A stretch of DNA of 63,062 bases, counting the filler, from Reticulomyxa filosa (taxonomy: Eukaryota; Protista; Foraminifera), in the NCBI GenBank assembly GCA_000512085.1. It is 23 parts of 23 records of this genome, joined end to end, with 100 filler letters (N's around TTAATTAATTAA, not from the genome) between each part and the next. Parts side by side here need not be neighbours in the genome. Positions count along the whole stretch, not along the records: positions 19,069 to 24,941 come from ASPP01003975.1; 22 more parts are not named here. One strand, written 5' to 3'. This document shows, one piece after another, positions 1-27,900 of this stretch. The number at the start of each line of letters is the position of its first letter. Positions within the stretch are counted from its first letter, which is position 1. A program made the translations under genes and the position numbers. The notes below the pieces were generated by a model, which made no database searches, was not told the DNA's origin, and was given only the letters and a program-made list of their open reading frames with translations.

Positions 1-1060
1 AAAAAAAAAAAAATTGTGTAACGTTGTCCTCAGGCTTGTTTGTTTTTCTCGAAGGCGACTTGGATGCTGTCTTGGTAGCGTTAGGAGTAGATAGTGGTTG
101 TTTCGACGTTTTTGTTCCAGTCGCTTCTGCTTTTCCTTGTTTCCTTGGCGTTGTCATCTTTGCATCATTCGTTGCACTTTTTCCTTTATCTTTTTCCTTT
201 TCTTTGTCTTTTGTCTTTTCCTTGGGTTTGTTGGCAGCGTCATTTTTGGTGGCCGTTTTTGCCTTTGGCTTGTCCGCAACATGTTCGTCGGCAATTTTTT
301 CATCTTCGTTTGATTTGGCCGTTTTTTGCGATTTGGACGCTTTGTTCGAGTCCGCGGGCTCTTTCTTATTGGACGACACATTTGCAGCCCTTGGACTTTT
401 GGCCGTCTTGGGAGACTTGGGCGCGGCTTTTGTTGATTTGTTGGTCGTCGACTCCACCGTCATCTTCCCGCTGCTCGGCGTTTTTATAGTGCTTTTTGTT
501 GCTTTTGCATTCTTTGGTGTTTTTGCATTTGCATTTGCATTTGTATTGGAATTAGGAAGTGGAAGTGGAAGTGGAAGTAATAGTGTTATTATTTTTACTA
601 TTGCTATCAACATCTTCTTGCTCTTTTTTCTTCTCTTTTTGGTTTTTTAACACCAACGAAAGTCCGCGCACAAATGTGCCATGTTTGTTCGATTCGCATT
701 TAAAGTATTGTCTTCCTTCTTTGCTCCCATCGCTTTTGCCTTTCGGCTTCTCCAGCGCTACGCCATACCATATTCCCTTTTTCAATGGTTGCAATCCAAC
801 ACATCACAAAATTTTCTTTTCCCATCTCATCTCATTTCATTTCATCCCACCCTCCTTCTCTTCCTCCTTCTCGTATGTTTTTGTGTTGTTTGCTCATTGC
901 TTTGGAAACAACCTAACCTCCATTGGCCCCGGTAAAATGCCGATATAACGAACTACGCCGTCACATTGCGTTGTCTTCACCGTTACCTTGTCTCCGACCG
1001 TTATGCGTGGAGGCTTTTCTGCTGCTGTTCCGCTGTTGTCATTTTCTTTGTTTGATAGGT

Positions 1061-3956: not shown

Positions 3957-4611
3957 GACTTCTGGTACAGCAAAAAAAAATGCTGGACCTAAATGACAAG
4001 CAATATTAAAATTTTTTTATAGCTTCGATATTAAAGCGCTTTGACTTTTGCCCGTTCTAAACTTGGCCTTGGATCTTATCACACAATGTTTGAAAAGTTA
4101 ACGTGAATGGACACAAATATTTTGGTGGGACTAGGAAATCTAGATACAGAAATTTTCAACTGCAATTCGAATTGATGAAATAACACTTTTTCTTTCTTTA
4201 TGTTCATTTCAAAAGAAATTTGTACTTTTTAATTATTCACATAATGCATCAAGTAAATATTTTTCATTACAAGACAGTTGTTTCATCTTTATTGACTTTT
4301 GTTTGTCTTATAATCATGAAACTTACAAACTTTTTTGTTTTTATCATAACAATGAAGCGTTTTGTATTTTGACTAGATTTTTCTCGTTGTTGAAAGCAAT
4401 TTTTTTAATGTTCTCATTCGTTTTCAAATAATTATTACAAGAGTATATTTGATGGCTGATTGCCTTTGATTGTAACAAACGCTTGTCTTTGGGTCAAGTA
4501 AAAGCACTTTTCTTCCTCACAGCAACACAAAACTTTTTTTTTGTTTCTACAGTTCTAAACCTTCAAAATAAAAAAAAGGAGTTTTGCTTTGAAGTTTACA
4601 TCATCGACATC

Positions 4612-6599
4612 ATGCTTGCGCAACTTCAACAAACGTTTTCCGAGGTAGGTAAAGAGGTTATTTTAAAAGCATGGAAGAATTGTAAGGAAAATATCGACGA
4701 GACAAAGGGTGCCTTAACTTGGCTAACAGAGAACACGTAACAATAGATTTCTACACAGTTTCTTTCTTTTTTCATAATAACCATTATGTTTTTTTGACAA
4801 TTATTACATTATATATTTTAATACAGCACAAATTTGCAACAACAGCAATATTTAATGGAATTATTTGAATATTTTGGAGATAAACTTGAAAAAACAACAA
4901 TATCACAAACATGGAAAAATTGCAATCAAATTTTTTTTGACACATATAAAAAATTAGAAGAAGTTTGTGCAATTTCCGACTTGAATGAGTTAAATGCATA
5001 TGAAATGTGTATATGACTGTCGAATAAAACAAAAAAATTATTGAATAGATTGAAAGAAGAAAATGAATTTAAAATACTTCGAGAAATATGTTTGCACATT
5101 TTGTGGAATATTTTAAAATATCCTAAACATATTAAATATCGTCAAATTCACAAACAAGCTTTATACAACTATTTATTTCTGAAATGTCATACATTAGGTG
5201 CAGATTTGGAAAAAGTATCTGTAGTTATGGAATGGTTTTTGCAATATTTTGGATTCAAAAAAGGAAATGATGATAATTGGTATTATCAACACCATCATAT
5301 TCAATTATTACATCTGTGGAAATGTTATCGATCAGCGATTAATCTACAAAAAATGTATTTTTGTGTGTTTATTTTGCTGCTGTTAATAAAGCGAATGATA
5401 TAAATATATAAATGATATAACCAATCATTTTAAATAGATATAAAACAAGACATTGGATTGTTAGAAGAGTGTGCATGTTATGGAATGGAAAATTGAAAGA
5501 TTATGAAAGTCTATTCGATTATGAACATCGAACAATAATGTTATTTGATGAACATAAATTAAAAATAAAATCATTACAACTTGGAAATCCAAAAAAATCA
5601 TCATTGGAATTCAATGTAAGTATTCAATGGTATAATGACATTGACATTCATCAAACACATGCCAAATGGGCTTGTCTCATTCTCAATCATACCTGGCACT
5701 TCCGCACAATTCATCCGTTAGATAGAGATGATTTATCAAATTGTGTATCAGTTAATGAAAGCAAAAACATACGAGTGTCTTTATCAATTATCAAATATAA
5801 ATTATCAATTATTTGTTAATATTCAATTGTTACGCTTATATTTCAAACACACAGGAATTCAACTCTTTCAATGTCATTTGGAAATCTATTGATAATAAGA
5901 CACACAAAGAGCCGTTGAATCCATATTCAATCACTTTCAAACAAGGAATACAACATGTACAACATAATTTACAAATGAGAAATCATTTTATGTTTGGAAT
6001 GGATGAACTAATATTATTTGAATGTAAATTTGACAAATGTAAACCAGCAATATCATCAAAAATATCAAAAATGAATGACTCAGATGTATTGTTATATGAT
6101 ATTTACAAACATCTTCCTCATTATCCAATTATTCAAGTACTTTGGGAAATAAAAGGATATTTTATGGTACCCTACAAACGCACAATTGGAATAGAAAGAA
6201 AAGATTTACCAAAAAGTAATGACTTAGGTATTGAATTTATTTCATCAAATCAAAAAACTAAATTCAATCCATTATTATATGAATGTGATTTGCACAAACT
6301 TAAAATTATTGAAGATGAATCAAGTGTAAAAGTGACAAGAAACAACAACTTGCAAAAACTGTTTCACGAAGTGATACAAAATAATTATTTATGTGATTTA
6401 ATCACATTCCAATCTAAACAAAATAAAAAAGAAGAAAAACAATTTTATAATAATATCAAAAAACAAATGAATTATAATGAAAAGGATGAAAATGGTGAAT
6501 TGATATTAAATGATTTGATATTAACAATATTAAATGAATTGAAGATATTGTATCATGATGATATTCATAAACAAATGGGATATCCACTTCAATTACATC
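4612..6599 (+). CDS. Multi-exon protein with CUE/UBA-like N-terminal helical repeats and a PUB-like domain (3' partial)
   Basis: QLQQTFSEVGKEVILKAWKNCKENID and LFEYFGDKLEKTTISQTWKNCNQ repeats. ILWNILKYPKHIKYRQI...FLQYFGF resembles PUB domains. Consecutive ORFs are separated by short GT-AG introns. Confidence 0.6.
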
Positions 6600-18938: not shown

Positions 18939-19074
18939 CTTGTCAATGTGGTGTTTTTTTTTTTTTTTNNNNNNNNNNNNNNNNNNNNNNNNNNNNNNNN
19001 NNNNNNNNNNNNTTAATTAATTAANNNNNNNNNNNNNNNNNNNNNNNNNNNNNNNNNNNNNNNNNNNNCCCCCC

Positions 19075-20013
19075 CCTCCCTATTGGAATTTACGTCCTTT
19101 GAAGTCCCGACCATAGCATTGGCATCCCATTCGTTCAGTTCCACTCCAAGAGAGTCTTTGTTGATCTCTCTCAATTGGATCAAAGGGACCCATGTAGTAG
19201 ACGATGCTGGCCTCGGGCTGTTTCACCATCAATATTTCTGCATGCGTTTTCACATCGCCGACCCATGTAAAGTAACTGCATCCCAGTTTGTATTCAACGT
19301 ATCTTTTTTCATTCAATCATTAAATAAGAATGCCTTGTCAACACGTCTTACGTTCAAAATAAAACAAAAACTTTTCAGCAGGGAAAATGTTTAGAAGAAA
19401 AGCTGAGACTGACCAATGGTTTTGTCTTTAAGCAAGACACGGTCGCTCACTTCAAACAAGACTTCTTTATTGTGGCTGCATTCTCCAGTTGTTTGACAAT
19501 TGTTTTCCTTGTGATAAACAAGCCATAAGCCCTCTTTGGTGGTGAAGTAGTTGTTGTCATTGTCCAATTCGATGCCCAACCAATCGTCTTTCCCAATGTA
19601 TTTGATCGCACCTGCAAAAAAGTCAATAGATTTTGTTTTTTTTTAAGCTGTTAAAAATCGATACGCAACTCAACAAATTAAAAGTGGAAAAAAGGCATGT
19701 GTATATGTACATTATGTATACATATGTATACATAATATATACGTATGTTTTAAAAAAAACACCTTTTCTATTATTAGTTAATTCAATTACCAACGACATA
19801 GTCACGAGAGTGATTTCTTGTACGATCTCGAAGTACCCTGTGGTCTTGACACACGCTCAACCATCGCTGTAGTGTTTCCACCATTTGTCGAAATTGTGGT
19901 GCCATGTCTTTCTTTTTAAGGATCTTTTTTTTGTCAAATCTACTTTGGAGTATCTTGACTTTAAAGACCAATTGCAAACTTTGTTCACGTTCATCAAGCT
20001 GAGCTTTTCCCAC
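19075..20013 (-). pseudogene. Decayed multi-CAP-Gly gene
   Basis: IELTNNRKG|AIKYIGKDDWLGIELDN..YFTTKEG, VSDRVLLKDKTIG and LGVELNEWDANA/FKGRKF pieces in shifting frames. Confidence 0.7.
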
Positions 20014-21163
20014 TGTTAAGGATTCTACGGGAAAATTTTTTTTTAAGCTGCATTTTTTGGTAAGAGATCATAGCTTTAAAAATAGAATAAATTATGTTTG
20101 TTGATCCGATCCCCACTCCTGGAATGTTCAGAAATTATGGTTAAAGATGTACATGTTTTGATAGTGTGTCATCAGATTGATTGTGGGTACATCTATCTGA
20201 GATTTTTCATCGATTTTCTTATTTTCGGTATCAACTATTTTTTCCACTTATGATAATTCCAAAAAAGAAGGAATACCCAAATTGAATAATCGATAACTTT
20301 GTTATTCTTTTTTTTTTTTTTTTGGATACTCAAAGCATTGAACTATTAAATTGGAAATGTTTTGAAATGAGTCTTTAGCTTGTATCTTCATTTGGTCACA
20401 ATACAATGACAAAAAAACATGATCTAATAAAAAAGTTTTTGGTAACAAAGTACTAAAAAAACAGATACGTACATTAATATTGAGAAACTTCGTTGTAATA
20501 ATCGACCCCCACTGTTGTGATTATTTTTTGTAATTTCACGTACTGATTATTATGGACCATCAATTTCGATCGATGAACAGAAGATAATATTGTAGACTTT
20601 ATTGTTTATTGTGGAAACGGTTTATAATCGAATATCTGATTTATTTTTTATTTATGAATAATTTCATGTAGTATTCACTTTCGAAACAAAAAAATTAATA
20701 TCATATTTTGATTGTAAAGATAGATGTACAACATCAACCTGAATGTTGCCAATCAAGAGAGACCAAATAGACAGTCGTATTTGTTTAGGCCGCGATGATC
20801 GCATCCTTTTTTTGAATGATGTTGTTATTTTGAGTGTGTTGGGTTTACACTGACTCTGTTCTTTCTTTTTCGGTAACTGTTGCAGTTTTGCAGAGAACGA
20901 ATCCTCGAGAAGCGAGCTCCATGTTGTATACTTTGGCTTGTTTGGTTGTTTAAAGAAAGAAGAGCCAAAACTATATTCATAATGTCGAAGAGAACTTTTT
21001 CTAAAAAGGGAAAACTTTTCTCTCTAGAGAAAAATCATTACTCAAGAAAAAGTGATTATTCATTCAAAAAAAACAATTTTAATTTCAATAATCTGTAATT
21101 AATCAATTTTTTATAACCAAAAATGAAATATTATACAAAAATTTGAACAATTCTTTTTTTCAA

Positions 21164-22380
21164 GTTGTTTTGCCAAAAATGCCAAAATATTCTAAAAAAT
21201 TGCAAATTTACATTTTTTTAATAGATATTTATTATTTGTGAATCTACGCGTTGTTTAAGAAAAAAAGGTCTTTTTTTTTGTTGGTTGTATCTCTGTATCT
21301 CTCGTACCAGTTCATAATTAGGGTGCTAATCGCCCTCTTCGCAAAACACTAGTATGTCTTTTTTTTTTTTAAGTTATTTTGAAACTTAAAAAGTGGTTTG
21401 TTTGTTTTTTTTTGAACAGTTCGCAAACTCTAAAAAAATATTAAAAAGATGTCATTTTTGTTTGGATCCTGTGCATCCTTCTGCAAGAGAAAAATAATAA
21501 TTGAATATGGGGTAAGGCCCCCCGTCTCCGCAAGGAGTACAACAGGTTTGATATATATTTATATATTTTTTTTGACTTAATTAACTTTGTTGTTTTTTGA
21601 TTGATAGCCGCAACCCGTCTGTCCAAAAAAAAAAAAAATTATATACATCCACATCCTCACCACATCCAAAGAAAAACTTCGGGGTTGAAGCCACCCCACA
21701 TTCAAAAAAAAATAAAAGAGTTTATATTTTCTGTTTTTTTTATTTTTATTTTTATCAAACGTTTGTATATTTGTGAACAGGCATGCCCCCATCAAAAAAA
21801 AAATGTATTTACCCCATCCCCGTTGCAAAAGAAAAAAAAAAGTAATAGGTGATTGTAATGTGAGCTTTTAGCTCGACAGTGAAAGTATGTTTTTGTTTAT
21901 TTTTGTTAAAAATAAACAAAATTTTCAATTTTTATTTATTTATAGGGTTCAAGAATCAAAAAAAAAAGATTGGAAAGTTTTATTTTTTTATTTTTTATAT
22001 ATATTTTATTTGTGTTTGAGATGAGAGGGATAGGAACAATTTGGGGGGAAAAAAAAAATAATGGAAAAATTAGGGAAAAATTGGGAAAAATAAAATAAAT
22101 TGAAAAGGGAGAAGAAAAAAGGGGAAAAATTTATTTAAGAAAATTGAAAAAAAAAATGAAGAATGAAAAATAAAAAAGAAATGTAAAAAATTTGGAAAAT
22201 GAAAAAGAAAAAAAAAAAGAGACAACGTGAAAAAAGTAATAAAAAAGAAAAAAAGATTAAAAATATATATAAATAAAAAAGATAAAAAGATAGAAATATA
22301 TAAAAAGAAAAAAAGAAAAAAAGAAAAAAAGAAAATGAAAAAAAGAAAATGAAAAAAAGATAAAAAAAAAAATTGTGACA
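21164..22380 (+). repeat. Dispersed structured, intron-bearing non-coding element, copy 1 (possible non-autonomous transposon)
   Basis: Colinear with the reverse complement of 47965-49079 and partly with 45629-46277. The 36-nt block 21507-21542 is identical to rc(48712-48747). Ends in an A-rich tract of ~330 nt. Confidence 0.9.
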
Positions 22381-24900
22381 ATGAGGAGCGTAGATTGATC
22401 GCTCATATCAAATGGATTGTGTACGTGCGCTTTTTCGCACTTTGTATTTTAGATTGTAAGTGTGCTTGGGTAGGGGGAGATTTGGAAAGACTTGTCGCAT
22501 CAATGGAGGAGCACAAGTCTATGCGAACAAAGTTGGTGCGGCAAATCACCAAAAAGGAGCCGAACTTCAATATATAGTCGCCAACAAACAATGGAGACTA
22601 ATTGTTATCGAAATGGCGCTAACTTCGTGAACATAGAACCTCGTCGTATGCATGCGCGCAATACTTTGTATTAGTCTCACTTGGTGAACAATGGAGCGTT
22701 GGTTGCCAATTTGCATTCGTTTGAATTGGATTTGTGTCTGGAGAATCGTTCAATGTGAAAGTGTCCCAGTTCGTGAAGGAGTTTTGCAAAACTCTACCAA
22801 GACACCAGGAAGCAAAAGATGGAGATGATAGGATGATGAATAGAAGAAAAAGAAATTGGAGCCATATCGCGTTTGGTAAGTTTTTAAAAAAATAAACATA
22901 AAGAAAAAAAAAATGTTATATCGCGCAAAGTAAGAACGACATCAACATTATGTTGTAGCAACGGCGGCTGGATTGACGAAGGAGTTGAGAACGGTGAAGA
23001 AAAAGAAAATAATTGGCATTGTGATCGAGCAAACCACACTACATTGGATAAATCATCTCATGAAAGAGTGGTTCAATTAGTTCGAGACGTACAAGACACC
23101 GGCAAGCAAGAAGAAAAAGAGTATAAAGATGATGATTTGTTTAAAAGGGAAAAAAAAACAACCAATCGACCGCCTTTATTAACTTTGGTTTGGAATTACT
23201 TCTTACGCAAAGTCGCCACTCGCAGGGCAGACTAACTTCCCATATTGCACCCCAATGAAAAATGTTAAAAAATATGTCAACGTCTGGCAGTGGTACCCGA
23301 AGTATTTGAAAGAACCTGTTTGCCATCAGCGTATACGATACAAGTCTCTGGCGCTGTGCCATGCAAACAATTATCCGCAAATATAATGTCCAGCTGCGAT
23401 GTACCGGCGCCAATGGCCAAGGGAAACTCTGTCGTTATGGAAATACTTACTTTTATAAACACAGCACAACAGTCGAAACGCATAGATTGTGCACTCATGT
23501 CGAAACTGATCGTGAACGTGCGCACATGCGCAAATTTGGACTTAGATCATAGGCGTACCGATTGGAGAAATCGTAAGTCACAGGCAATATTGAGCATCGA
23601 CAATTCTTGAATAAATAGAGTTTGTTGTATTTTCCGGGTTCACCGTTGCAATAGTGGTTTGCTTTGCGTTTGTCGAATAAACGCACATAATCTTTGCCGA
23701 ACTGCCTCCACGATCGACTATTGACTACGGACGACGTGTTGGATGGCACTCAAGAAAACCAGAAAGAAGAATAGCAACAAATACGCCCAAAAAAAAAAAT
23801 GCAAATGGTACCATTCCTCACCGGATTGCCGATCCAAAAATTGTTGAATAAATGCATTGGTGATAGATGCGAGAATTTCCAGTAACGACAACCGTTCAAG
23901 GCCAAAGCGTGTTTTTTATCACAAGGGCGATTAGAGTGAATGAATTTGTTATTTAGAAAATATCCATTTTATGACTGCATTGGAACAGTGGAAAAAAAGT
24001 ATACAGTTCAATCGTCGACGGTCTGGATCTTGGCGCTGTCAAGAACAAAGAAAAAAAAAGACGTGATGATATCGCTCAAAATGGAAACGATATCGATATT
24101 GCTATATTGCAACAACAGCAGCGACTGAATTGGTAGAAGAAATGAAAGAAAAAAAATAAGAGGATGCGGACGTTGTAGGAAATAAATAATCACATATGAT
24201 CCGTCGAGTAAGACACTCTCAATGGAACTCTTCTTACGATATCGTGACTCAATTTGGTGGAAACTCAAGCCGACATCACCAGCAGGCAAGAAGAGGAAAA
24301 CAGGAGGAGGAAGGTGCGATTATGAATAGAAAGAAGTCAGAGAATATTGCGTTGAATTTGTTTTAAAAAGAAAAAAATCATCTGCAACTTCAGTCATGAA
24401 ATCGCCTTTCACGCCCGCGAGTGGCGGCTTTGCGCACTTGTGCATGGACTAGTGCGCCTACAATGGAAGCGTCTTGCCAGGTGTGACAATGTCAAGTGCA
24501 GTGCCAGTGACGATTATAATGACAACAACAAAATGCAGTCCATGTCCTCTTTTTTGTCAATTGTTTTAACACATTGGACTGGTGTTGCTGCTGTATTTTG
24601 CGATTTGATTTGTGTACGGAAGAGAATGTTGTAAACATCTGTTAAAAAAGGAACAACATCGTGCCAGTCGATAATTGGGTCGACGATTCGAAAACCAGTC
24701 CATCATTTATCAAATCAAGAAAAAGCTTGAATATTGGCAATGTCGGTGGCACTGGGCTCTTTTCACATGGGTTTGCTGTTATTTCGATTGGTCGTTTATG
24801 TGCGTCTGTCCAAGCTCCTGGTACATGTTGTTAAATCTTATTTGGGTCCATTGCTTGAAAAAGTCTTTGTATGTACATATTCAATAACTAATCGCAACAC
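22381..24900 (+). pseudogene. Decayed fragment of a large-protein family ('family X', possibly the RNF213-like C-terminal half)
   Basis: Coding-like composition with many stops and frameshifts. VSGAVPCKQLSANIMSSCDVPAPMAKGNSVVMEI is homologous to 34894-35480(-) and to ~55100-55155(+). Confidence 0.7.
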
Positions 24901-27900
24901 AGAATTTTTATACGTATATTGATTATTTATTTGTGTGTATGNNNNNNNNNNNNNNNNNNNNNNNNNNNNNNNNNNNNNNNNNNNNTTAATTAATTAANNN
25001 NNNNNNNNNNNNNNNNNNNNNNNNNNNNNNNNNNNNNNNNNTTTTTTAATGAAAAAAGGTTTGTGTGGATGTTGATGAGAGGGTGAGTCCTTTGTGTTGC
25101 ACACTTTTTTTTTTAAGAAAAACTTGAATCAAATATAAAAATTTTCATGATGATAATTTTCTGGAATGAATTTTTTTTACTCAGTATGATTGAAAGAATT
25201 GAATGAAATGAAAATATATTGTTTTTTGTAGTTGATTATTGGCAAGCTAAACTATACCAATAATTAACGCTTTCTTCCAAGTTGAAAAGAATTGTATTTG
25301 TAATTTTTGACTTTTTGTCGATGATAAAAAAAAATTTTTCAACAGGAGAATGATAATTATTTTTATGGAGACAAGTCGTTGGCGTTTCATTTTCAAACAA
25401 AAAGAAATACAATTTCTAAAATAATCATCAATTATACAAAATTTAAAGTTATCACACTAATTGTAAAAATCCAAGAAATGTGTGCCAGTGCTCCCAAGAG
25501 TTTATTTTCGTTGCCAAATATTTCTACTCAATACCTCTTCGGAAAAGATCACATTTCCAGTTTTGTTGAGGCTCCATTCTGTTCAATCTTTTCGCAAATC
25601 TTTCATATTCGAGTCAATGTTTCAGCATATACGTTTTCAAAGTCTTTGGCTTCCAACGATTAATTTTTGTTTCCTTTTTTTATTTGATATGCATCCAACA
25701 ATCTAAATGCTTCTATTTCCACAGAAATAAATTCTTCAAAATTTTAATCGAGTTGGCTTTTGCTCACCAGACAAGGCTCCAATTTTTGTGATTGTCTTAT
25801 TTTTCTTTCTTTGTAGTCAGTCATCTGTTACTGCTTGTGGTATCATCATGTTCCAGTTCCTCTATTTGTAGAAGAAAACAACAACAAATTAATTCAATCA
25901 TTTGTTAATATTCTTGCTTGAAGGCGATAATCACAGTTCTCTTGCATCAAAAAAATAATCCAATCAACAACGTACCATAATTTCGATATGTTCCATCAAT
26001 CAATATGGAAATTATATTAATTTGAATGTATGGTGTATGTGACATTTGAAATCACATACAACATACTCGACGCAAATATCCGATCAACTGGAATGGACCG
26101 AATAGATTCACAATTGATTGACTCTTTGATGTTTTCACTAGCATTGACTACCGTTGGAATAATTTTTTTATTTCGCTTGGCCTTCTTCACTATTCGTTAC
26201 ATAAAATGAAAATATAAAGAAGCAACAATTGAAAATTGGTGATATACGTATATACATACATATTGATATAAATATATGTGTATGTAAAAAAGATAACATT
26301 GGAATCAGTACCAGCTATGTGATAATTGGATCTTCTTTGGTTTTGTGACTTTTTTCATAGGATTTGATCTTCGACTGCAATTGAACAACACGATCACCAA
26401 CATCTAAACTATTGTTGTCCATTTGAAGAATATGCTCAATGTTGTGTCATTATTTTTTCTGACTTGGCCATTTTTGTTTCGAATTCAGTGATCTTTGCTT
26501 TTCTTCTTCTTCTTTCGAGTGGATTTGCTCGTCCCAATTAAGATGTTGGCGCTCCTATCCGCTTTCCAATTGTCAATATTCGCTGTTTGGTACATGTTGC
26601 TTCTTTGCTTTTAATCCTTTGTNNNNNNNNNNNNNNNNNNNNNNNNNNNNNNNNNNNNNNNNNNNNTTAATTAATTAANNNNNNNNNNNNNNNNNNNNNN
26701 NNNNNNNNNNNNNNNNNNNNNNAAAAAAAAAGATCACTTTTCTCAACTGTTAAATTCAATGCTTTTTCGTCATTGCTAAATGCTTGAGTGACACTGTAAC
26801 ATCGGTCATTTCATAAAGTATCGACAACCTTCCAACAAGTCGTTCCATCTTCGTCTTCATTCATATTATGTGAAGTATTCACTCGATTTTCTTTTCCTTT
26901 GCTTTTGCTGTTTGTGGTGTCGGTGAGACTTGTGCTTCAGTTATCGCACTTGTGCGAATAAGTATTTGAAGTGTCGACGCCAATGTTGGCCTTCGCTGTG
27001 CTCTCTCGACCGCATGCTATAGTATCGCACACAAGACACAAAGCAACAGTAGCAACATAATCAACTGAAAAGAAATATGAAAAAAAAACTGATGAAAGCG
27101 TGTGGATGTGGAGAATTACGAGAGCGGGTGTCATAAGAAATATATGAGGAAGCAATGACAACACTGTTTTGCCATTGTGATTATAATGATTATTGTAGTT
27201 GTATGTGTAATTGTAGTAACGATTGTCCGAGCGGGATGCCATGTGATCGTTAGTCACACATTGTCGAGTTTGATTTTCTTGTCTTTCCAGTTTGCATCCC
27301 AATCCGTTGTCTCCTACGACATCAAGTTCAATCCCAAACAGTACATTTCAAATAAGTCCTTGCACAAACAAAAAGAAAATTATAACAGACGATTTCATCT
27401 GTCAGGACACGCCGAAAAATTCACAGAAAAACCACTTGAAAAGTCATCATAGTGCGACATCTTTCTAAAACGAATTCACTTTTTCATCCTTTTTTAGTCT
27501 TATGACAAACCCTTGGTTGTCGCACTAGCAAGGAAAGTTTGACTTATGTTGGGATGGAAAGTTCACTTTTAAACGTTTTACAACAAGTACTTTTGGTTTG
27601 TTTATTCTTTTAGCAACAAAGAAACAAAACTTTAAAAATCAGAATAAAGTTATTTGATAAAAAAAATATTACAACGGGGAAACGGAAGCGCATGTATTAA
27701 AAAAAGGTTTGTTCTTACCACAGACAGAGACCTTGTCACTGCCAATGGCTACTTATTATTGCGAGGTCGATATTTAGCATTGCTTGCTCGACATGGCAAA
27801 GACCAAACAAAACTCAAGAAACTAGATTATCACATGTTAAGCTTACAGTCACTACTGCAGCAAGTGGCTGAGACTACCAAAGACCTCTGTGAATACAAGG

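Follow-up and report, generated by a model that had tools for sequence, protein, structure and literature searches.

Hairpin-capable GC islands in an apparently undescribed low-copy repeat of Reticulomyxa filosa, and the case for neutral drift

When small GC-rich hairpins recur in order through AT-rich DNA, are they the stems of a folded molecule maintained by selection, or simply what decaying duplicated DNA looks like? One locus of the foraminiferan Reticulomyxa filosa raises the question. In the window, by which we mean the whole stretch of DNA analysed (63,062 nucleotides, filler included), contig ASPP01003975.1 (5873 bp, assembly GCA_000512085.1) sits reversed at positions 19069-24941, and upstream of the gene RFI_04380 lies DNA of 16-32% GC in which a sequence-only reading had picked out six GC-rich hairpin or palindrome islands, together with an outer stem around the first. 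All of these are present in the sequence. That reading saw in them the mark of selection on RNA or single-stranded DNA structure. Our own conclusion, held with moderate confidence, is that this upstream DNA represents one copy of a low-copy, non-coding nuclear repeat of R. filosa, apparently undescribed, which spreads and decays at the DNA level by neutral drift. The gene and the parts of the repeat are as follows, in window positions:

19080-20560, minus strand: RFI_04380 (ETO32736.1), the sole annotated gene of ASPP01003975.1, an orphan
20988-22380, plus strand: repeat unit, copy 1, in its full long form of about 1.4 kb, running from the left arm through the central part to the A-rich tail (aligned to L001 and L007 with blastn and MAFFT)
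20988-21440, plus strand: left arm with island 1, found by alignment in all forms (copy 1, both L001 copies and, for its first 115 nt, L004)
21441-22040, plus strand: central part with islands 2-6, in long copies only (alignment of copies)
21668-21717, plus strand: best-conserved block of about 50 nt, containing island 4 (alignment of copies)
21710-21747, plus strand: T-rich internal direct repeat with its partner at 21958-21995 (repeat scan); the pair brackets the deletion in L007
22041-22380, plus strand: A/G-rich low-complexity tail of 340 nt (GC skew +0.9, AT skew +0.66), with a period-8 AAAAAAGA array

The left edge of the unit, at 20988, is the abrupt start of homology, at AAGAGAACTTTTTCT, with the longer of two copies carried in inverted orientation by contig L001 (ASPP01005238.1). 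This long copy (L001 copy 2, 4513-5734) is 73% identical to 21016-22263, and the contig end falls inside its A-rich tail; the short copy occupies 557-1 on the reverse strand, and the inverted pair share 84% identity across 442 nt. The remaining copy, L007 (ASPP01048010.1, 410 bp), is a fragment over its positions 1-410, in which the tail follows islands 3 and 4 and only the 3' half of island 2 is present. The further contigs were reached via paralogous proteins, and L007 via a profile of two element ORFs, whose sole match was RFI_39536. A similar A-rich tail, on the same strand, ends all four copies. The contig that carries RFI_33865 (L004) ends 115 nt into the element, the paralog contigs L002, L005 and L006 stop short of it, and no second copy was found within the ASPP01003975.1 part (19069-24941). 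The longest exact blocks shared with copy 1 measure 28 and 27 nt in L007 and 19 nt in L001. The best-conserved block, 21668-21717, reaches past island 4 into A-rich flanks (CAAAGAAAAA upstream, CATTCAAAA..AAAATAAAA downstream) and has a 27-nt exact match to L007. That the element is multi-copy, as had been claimed, is borne out by the independent copies at L001 4513-5734, L001 557-1 and L007 1-410; as these lie on further contigs, the repeat is real. More copies are probable, since the variants quoted earlier (a TCAA loop, GGAATTCC and an agcaacc loop) are unlike any copy compared. Exact and gapped DNA patterns drawn from the best-conserved blocks gave 0 matches in metagenome, prokaryotic and viral contigs, collections that hold no R. 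filosa.

How the copies arose is suggested by what surrounds them. The repeat lies 0.4-1.8 kb upstream of the annotated starts of RFI_04380 and its paralogs and is oriented away from the gene, and the same upstream block is found at RFI_06206 (on L001) and RFI_33865 (on L004). Homology runs unbroken from the gene through upstream DNA into the element, 19838-21438 aligning with L001 1690-134 and 19827-21131 with L004 1271-1, and these alignments identify three copies as the 5'-flanking DNA of a gene block that was duplicated. We infer that an orphan gene family (RFI_04380, RFI_06206 and RFI_33865) was amplified recently and that its 5'-flanking block would form the core of the repeat, gene and flank having probably been copied jointly through segmental, partly inverted, duplication, with at least one further partial copy presumably placed elsewhere at a sharp breakpoint. 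The locus shares with segmental duplications and low-copy repeats a homology that passes from gene and introns through upstream DNA to the element without interruption, a similar divergence throughout, an inverted pair within one contig and internal deletions flanked by simple-sequence runs; it differs in that at least one copy, L001 4513-5734, lacks the gene and sets in at a sharp breakpoint. For this copy, homology past the element into the flanking gene and introns fails, and its inner end is without a recognisable adjoining gene.

The exon of RFI_04380 at 19412-19612 (minus strand) is a 100% match to ETO32736.1, and the only domain signal is a sub-threshold similarity to CAP-Gly. Between its paralogous copies (19292-20987 against L001 and L004) exons are 85-89% identical, the large intron 88-94% and upstream DNA 85-86%. 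With exons no better kept than intron or upstream DNA, RFI_04380, RFI_06206 and RFI_33865 may be drifting pseudogenes or over-predicted models. Two matches to known RNA families, both outside the element, were rejected. An intronic, palindromic TA/CA microsatellite at 19689-19753, which recurs in the paralogous intron (L001 2063-2127), resembled the microRNA mir-297 of Rfam at 39 bits, far below the 90-bit gathering score, and an AT-rich palindrome at 20259-20319 resembled the Plastid-psbA-4 3'UTR model on both strands at 29-32 bits (gathering score 56.8); each is a low-complexity palindrome, the first looks like an artefact of that kind rather than a microRNA, and the second match is almost certainly chance. 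On the far side of the repeat, 22381-24941 is unannotated, has 40% GC and holds short ORFs only (<110 aa, without a Pfam match). It also contains weak internal repeats about 1.1 kb apart (22388-22463 resembling 23480-23556 at 70%, and 22900-23134 resembling 24047-24316 at 61%), a recurring short ACAATGGAG-like motif and ten small GC hairpins, and shows no similarity to the other contigs compared.

A place upstream of RFI_04380 and its paralogs would also suit a regulatory role, in which the islands would serve a promoter or enhancer as short, palindromic, G/C-rich boxes for protein binding, copied along with the regulated gene. Several islands are indeed DNA palindromes, and Dictyostelium offers well-known examples of G/C boxes in AT-rich promoters. 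Islands 2-6 are, however, missing from the short form found at RFI_06206, no gene can be recognised next to the inner end of L001 copy 2, and conservation does not exceed that of introns; we regard this role as very improbable.

A more serious competitor, if still an unlikely one, is a degenerate non-autonomous transposable element, whether an unclassified DNA element or a retroposon-like unit whose 3' tail is A-rich, that was inserted upstream before the gene family expanded and also landed elsewhere, in L001 copy 2, L007 and the other locus of the sequence-only reading. L001 copy 2 begins to align abruptly at its 5' side, and this edge together with the A-rich tails counts against the neutral view in so far as both also fit a mobile element; the long A-rich tail stands on the same strand in four of four copies; and contigs break within the element, as they do in repeats, which are reported to make up about 30% of the R. 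filosa assembly (PMC13746701). Beyond the A-rich tail and the one sharp boundary, positive hallmarks of transposition nonetheless did not turn up. An inverted-repeat scan returned only low-complexity matches of A-runs to T-runs as terminal inverted repeats, ARAGORN found no tRNA in the element, and ARAGORN and Rfam found no tRNA-, 7SL- or 5S-like head with an internal pol III promoter. Nor is there a recognisable target-site duplication, no clear direct repeat flanking 20988 and 22380 in a comparison that offers two independent left flanks and one right end only; the 3' end is seen in no second independent context. Among non-LTR retroposons and SINE-like elements, A-rich tails are familiar from the TRE elements of Dictyostelium and from plant SINEs. 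The R. filosa repeat shares with them a 5' edge that is defined in one independent context, a 3' tail that is long, A-rich and confined to one strand, and a non-coding character, but it shows no pol III head, no recognisable target-site duplication and no 5' truncation series. Its variants do the opposite, keeping the 5' part and losing internal or 3' parts, and block duplication with the gene already explains three of the copies.

In the L001 short copy the sequence passes straight from about 21449 to about 22200 and is without islands 2-6, and L007 jumps from 21753 to about 22050, between the T-rich direct repeats, and is without islands 5-6, so that islands 2-6 or 5-6 are dispensable in two of four copies. 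The deletion junctions of these short and truncated forms lie in A/T-rich runs or internal direct repeats. Under the duplication that we favour, the copies would drift neutrally as A/T runs expand, contract and recombine, yielding the short forms that have shed islands 2-6 or 5-6, and the few GC-rich clusters that remain alignable would thereby come to look like persisting islands.

What, then, has become of the islands where they do survive? In copy 1 they are:

21304-21355, plus strand: island 1, an extended stem-loop in which an 8-pair outer stem surrounds a 6-pair hairpin at 21320-21336 (RNAalifold, three copies)
21509-21521, plus strand: island 2, GGGGT-aag-GCCCC; in L001 copy 2 it reads GAGC-aag-GCCCA, with two of five pairs lost
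21526-21537, plus strand: island 3, CTCC-GCAA-GGAG; the stem is invariant and the loop changes from GCAA to GCGA, remaining GNRA
21681-21697, plus strand: island 4, GGGGT-tgaagcc-ACCCC; one G-C to G.T change in L001, identical in L007
21780-21787, no strand assigned: island 5, the palindrome GGCATGCC; GGCACGCC in L001 copy 2, deleted in L007
21862-21874, plus strand: island 6, GAGCT-ttt-AGCTC; in L001 copy 2 the stem is unchanged and the loop goes from TTT to TTG; deleted in L007

The contention that hairpin-capable GC islands recur in order between copies is right. Island 2 is broken in L001 copy 2, as is the palindrome of island 5 through its reading GGCACGCC, and islands have been deleted outright from two copies. 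Islands 3, 4 and 6 have no pair changed on both sides and are uninformative either way. Island 4 also has an alternative to its local hairpin, a GC block (GCAACCC, 21612-21618) that can pair with its 5' half.

In island 1 the outer stem, GTACCAGT/ACTAGTAT at 21304-11 and 21348-55, closes a stem-loop that is followed by a T run (21359-21370), and RNAalifold, applied to the 14 pairs of the whole stem-loop in three copies, counted one compensatory pair, three G.U changes and three unpaired cells. The compensatory change is the one described earlier, a G-C to T-A double change beside a T.G pair that is kept, and it occurs in both L001 copies; being common to the two, it represents one event. Four of five loop positions have changed, against 7 of 28 stem positions. 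Set against this, each copy has a different mismatch in the outer stem, fold z-scores in the three copies are -1.7, -2.1 and -0.8, and in the L001 short copy (z = -0.8) the structure is not the minimum-energy fold. The broader claim of compensatory base changes is sustained only by this pair in island 1. Among some 33 stem pairs of the element it is the sole compensatory one, a total equalled by 175 of 500 shuffles, and in a comparison of 2-4 sequences per helix, four copies in all and of low power, RNAalifold with shuffles placed covariation no higher than chance and gave no significant covariation supporting the helices. The single change in island 1 lies within chance, and hairpin-templated repair by template switching could also make it.

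Hairpins are nevertheless somewhat denser here than composition predicts. An automatic scan for short GC-rich hairpins found five in 21290-21890 against 1.1 in dinucleotide shuffles, none of 500 of which reached five, and block shuffles that keep local composition gave an expectation of 1.4-1.8 (P about 0.005). Measured against 17.5 kb of other R. filosa DNA, which carries 2.29 hairpins per kb, the five (in 877 nt) compare with 2.0 expected (P = 0.05), and given an excess over shuffles that is only marginal against real R. filosa DNA the enrichment is real but modest. Folding of the 600-nt region gave z = -2.8 on the plus strand and -1.4 on the minus strand, from 20 shuffles only, and single islands range from -0.8 to -2.6.

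Whether the islands resist change is best judged against DNA with no such structures. Between copy 1 and the paralogous loci the left arm is 80% identical and the island-1 hairpin 79%, as compared with 85-94% for exons, introns and upstream DNA; set beside the 88-94% of the large intron, the 79% of the hairpin means that it is conserved no better than introns, and the element diverges like its neutral flanks or more than them. Some measures lean the other way, both on islands that had been picked after viewing the sequences: stem positions changed in 12 of 66 cases against 21 expected (P = 0.026), and the islands of the sequence-only reading are 83% identical against 71% in random blocks (P = 0.03). 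Outside the islands, G/C sites turn to A/T at three times the per-site rate of the opposite change (35% against 11%), which is expected of AT-rich DNA at equilibrium, and a two-state model allowing for mostly ancestral island G/C sites predicts a G/C loss of 20-25%. The islands as originally chosen lost 10.5% (P 0.006-0.03 against the model), GC blocks defined by composition lost 17% (P 0.09-0.25) and automatically found hairpins 14% (P 0.09-0.22). G/C retention therefore fits neutral AT-biased decay once islands are defined blind to conservation, and their persistence would largely reflect compositional heterogeneity and A/T-run slippage.

It follows that the original interpretation, which takes the islands for stems, whether in a structured RNA or in single-stranded DNA hairpins, that selection maintains in a functional element family, has fared poorly, and we hold it to be most improbable. 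To its credit stand the compensatory change and faster-evolving loop of island 1, the nested stem-loop that RNAalifold recovers in three copies, the GNRA loops (GCAA and GCGA) of island 3, and the hairpin enrichment and lower rate of stem change given above. Ranged on the other side are covariation at chance level, single-hairpin folds of variable stability, stems that are broken or uninformative, the mismatches peculiar to each copy, the loss of islands 2-6 or 5-6 from some copies, hairpin conservation no better than that of neighbouring introns, and a search of Rfam 15 at E up to 1 that gave no match inside the element in copy 1, L001 or L007. A nested stem-loop with a GNRA-type hairpin nearby is a feature shared with structured RNA families, but no Rfam family matches any copy. 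As far as the alignments reach, selection for hairpin structure is not supported by the copies compared, and hairpins that give no convincing sign of it look like part of ordinary drifting duplicated DNA. The short hairpins would on that account be small GC palindromes with no demonstrable structural role in RNA or single-stranded DNA.

There is a mobile precedent for GC-rich palindromes in AT-rich DNA, namely the GC clusters of yeast mitochondria, short GC-rich palindromic hairpin elements that move among AT-rich spacers. The R. filosa islands resemble them in being short, GC-rich, self-complementary and set in very AT-rich non-coding DNA. They differ in that their context is nuclear, with an adjoining gene that has spliceosomal introns, and in that they keep a fixed order within one larger repeat, are mutually dissimilar and give no sign of moving singly.

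Could the element instead be, or have been, transcribed and spliced? On this view it is a unit divergent to RFI_04380, a decayed pseudogene or a spliced non-coding RNA, in which the spacers are short GT..AG introns and the GC-richer island blocks are exon remnants. The spacers 21547-21607 and 21727-21779 start with GT and end with AG after a T-rich tract, their length of about 60 nt comes close to the mean for introns of the species (87 nt), and their GT and AG dinucleotides are kept in three copies. The annotators, moreover, drew spliced models on other copies. One is RFI_39536 on L007, and another is a 154-aa model on L001 with an intron (5034-5093) that corresponds to the first spacer; such models and the intron-like spacers would suit a spliced non-coding transcript or a dead gene. 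GT and AG are, however, non-specific in DNA so similar and so AT-rich, and the real introns of RFI_04380 have no consensus beyond GT..AG. No conserved ORF was found between the copies: similarity hops between reading frames, indels are not multiples of three, and copy 1 has in-frame stops where the annotators' L001 model runs on. The exons of that model, searched singly, had no Pfam match, a protein search with the ORF at 21601-21849 returned nothing, and exact look-up of ten ORFs of the stretch in a protein collection found none present. A coding reading of the element was rejected on the unconserved frame, the in-frame stops and the exons without a Pfam match, and a transcribed unit of the kind described seems to us improbable. 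The earlier description of a repeated, non-coding, apparently undescribed foraminiferan element was right.

The deposited hypothetical proteins lie over copies of the repeat and its A-rich tail, on L001 at 8-654 (minus strand, 110 aa), 4682-5315 (plus strand, 154 aa) and 5526-5702 (plus strand, 58 aa), and on L007 at 150-356 (plus strand, RFI_39536, 68 aa). These models are K/F-rich and without a domain match and their frame is not conserved between copies, and so they are probably spurious.

Neutral drift of duplicated DNA does not account for everything with equal ease. Stems are less changed than expected, hairpins exceed shuffles, and the island 1 stem-loop with its T run is kept in three copies. 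On the boldest reading the locus would be a foraminiferan-specific functional unit, perhaps a mobile element that bears hairpins or a non-coding transcript that is spliced, with small GC stems kept by selection, above all the island 1 stem-loop with its T run and the island 4 block, and with the short forms as decayed copies; we consider this improbable.

Were real covariation or a transcript to emerge, Foraminifera would have in this element one of their first described families of non-coding RNA or transposons, although present evidence points elsewhere. As it stands, the repeat helps to explain why contigs break at this place in a poorly assembled, repeat-rich foraminiferan genome, and it suggests that the hypothetical models placed on its copies, RFI_39536 and the three on ASPP01005238.1, may be discounted as probably spurious. 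It also illustrates how, in AT-rich DNA, GC islands can pass for conserved RNA hairpins.
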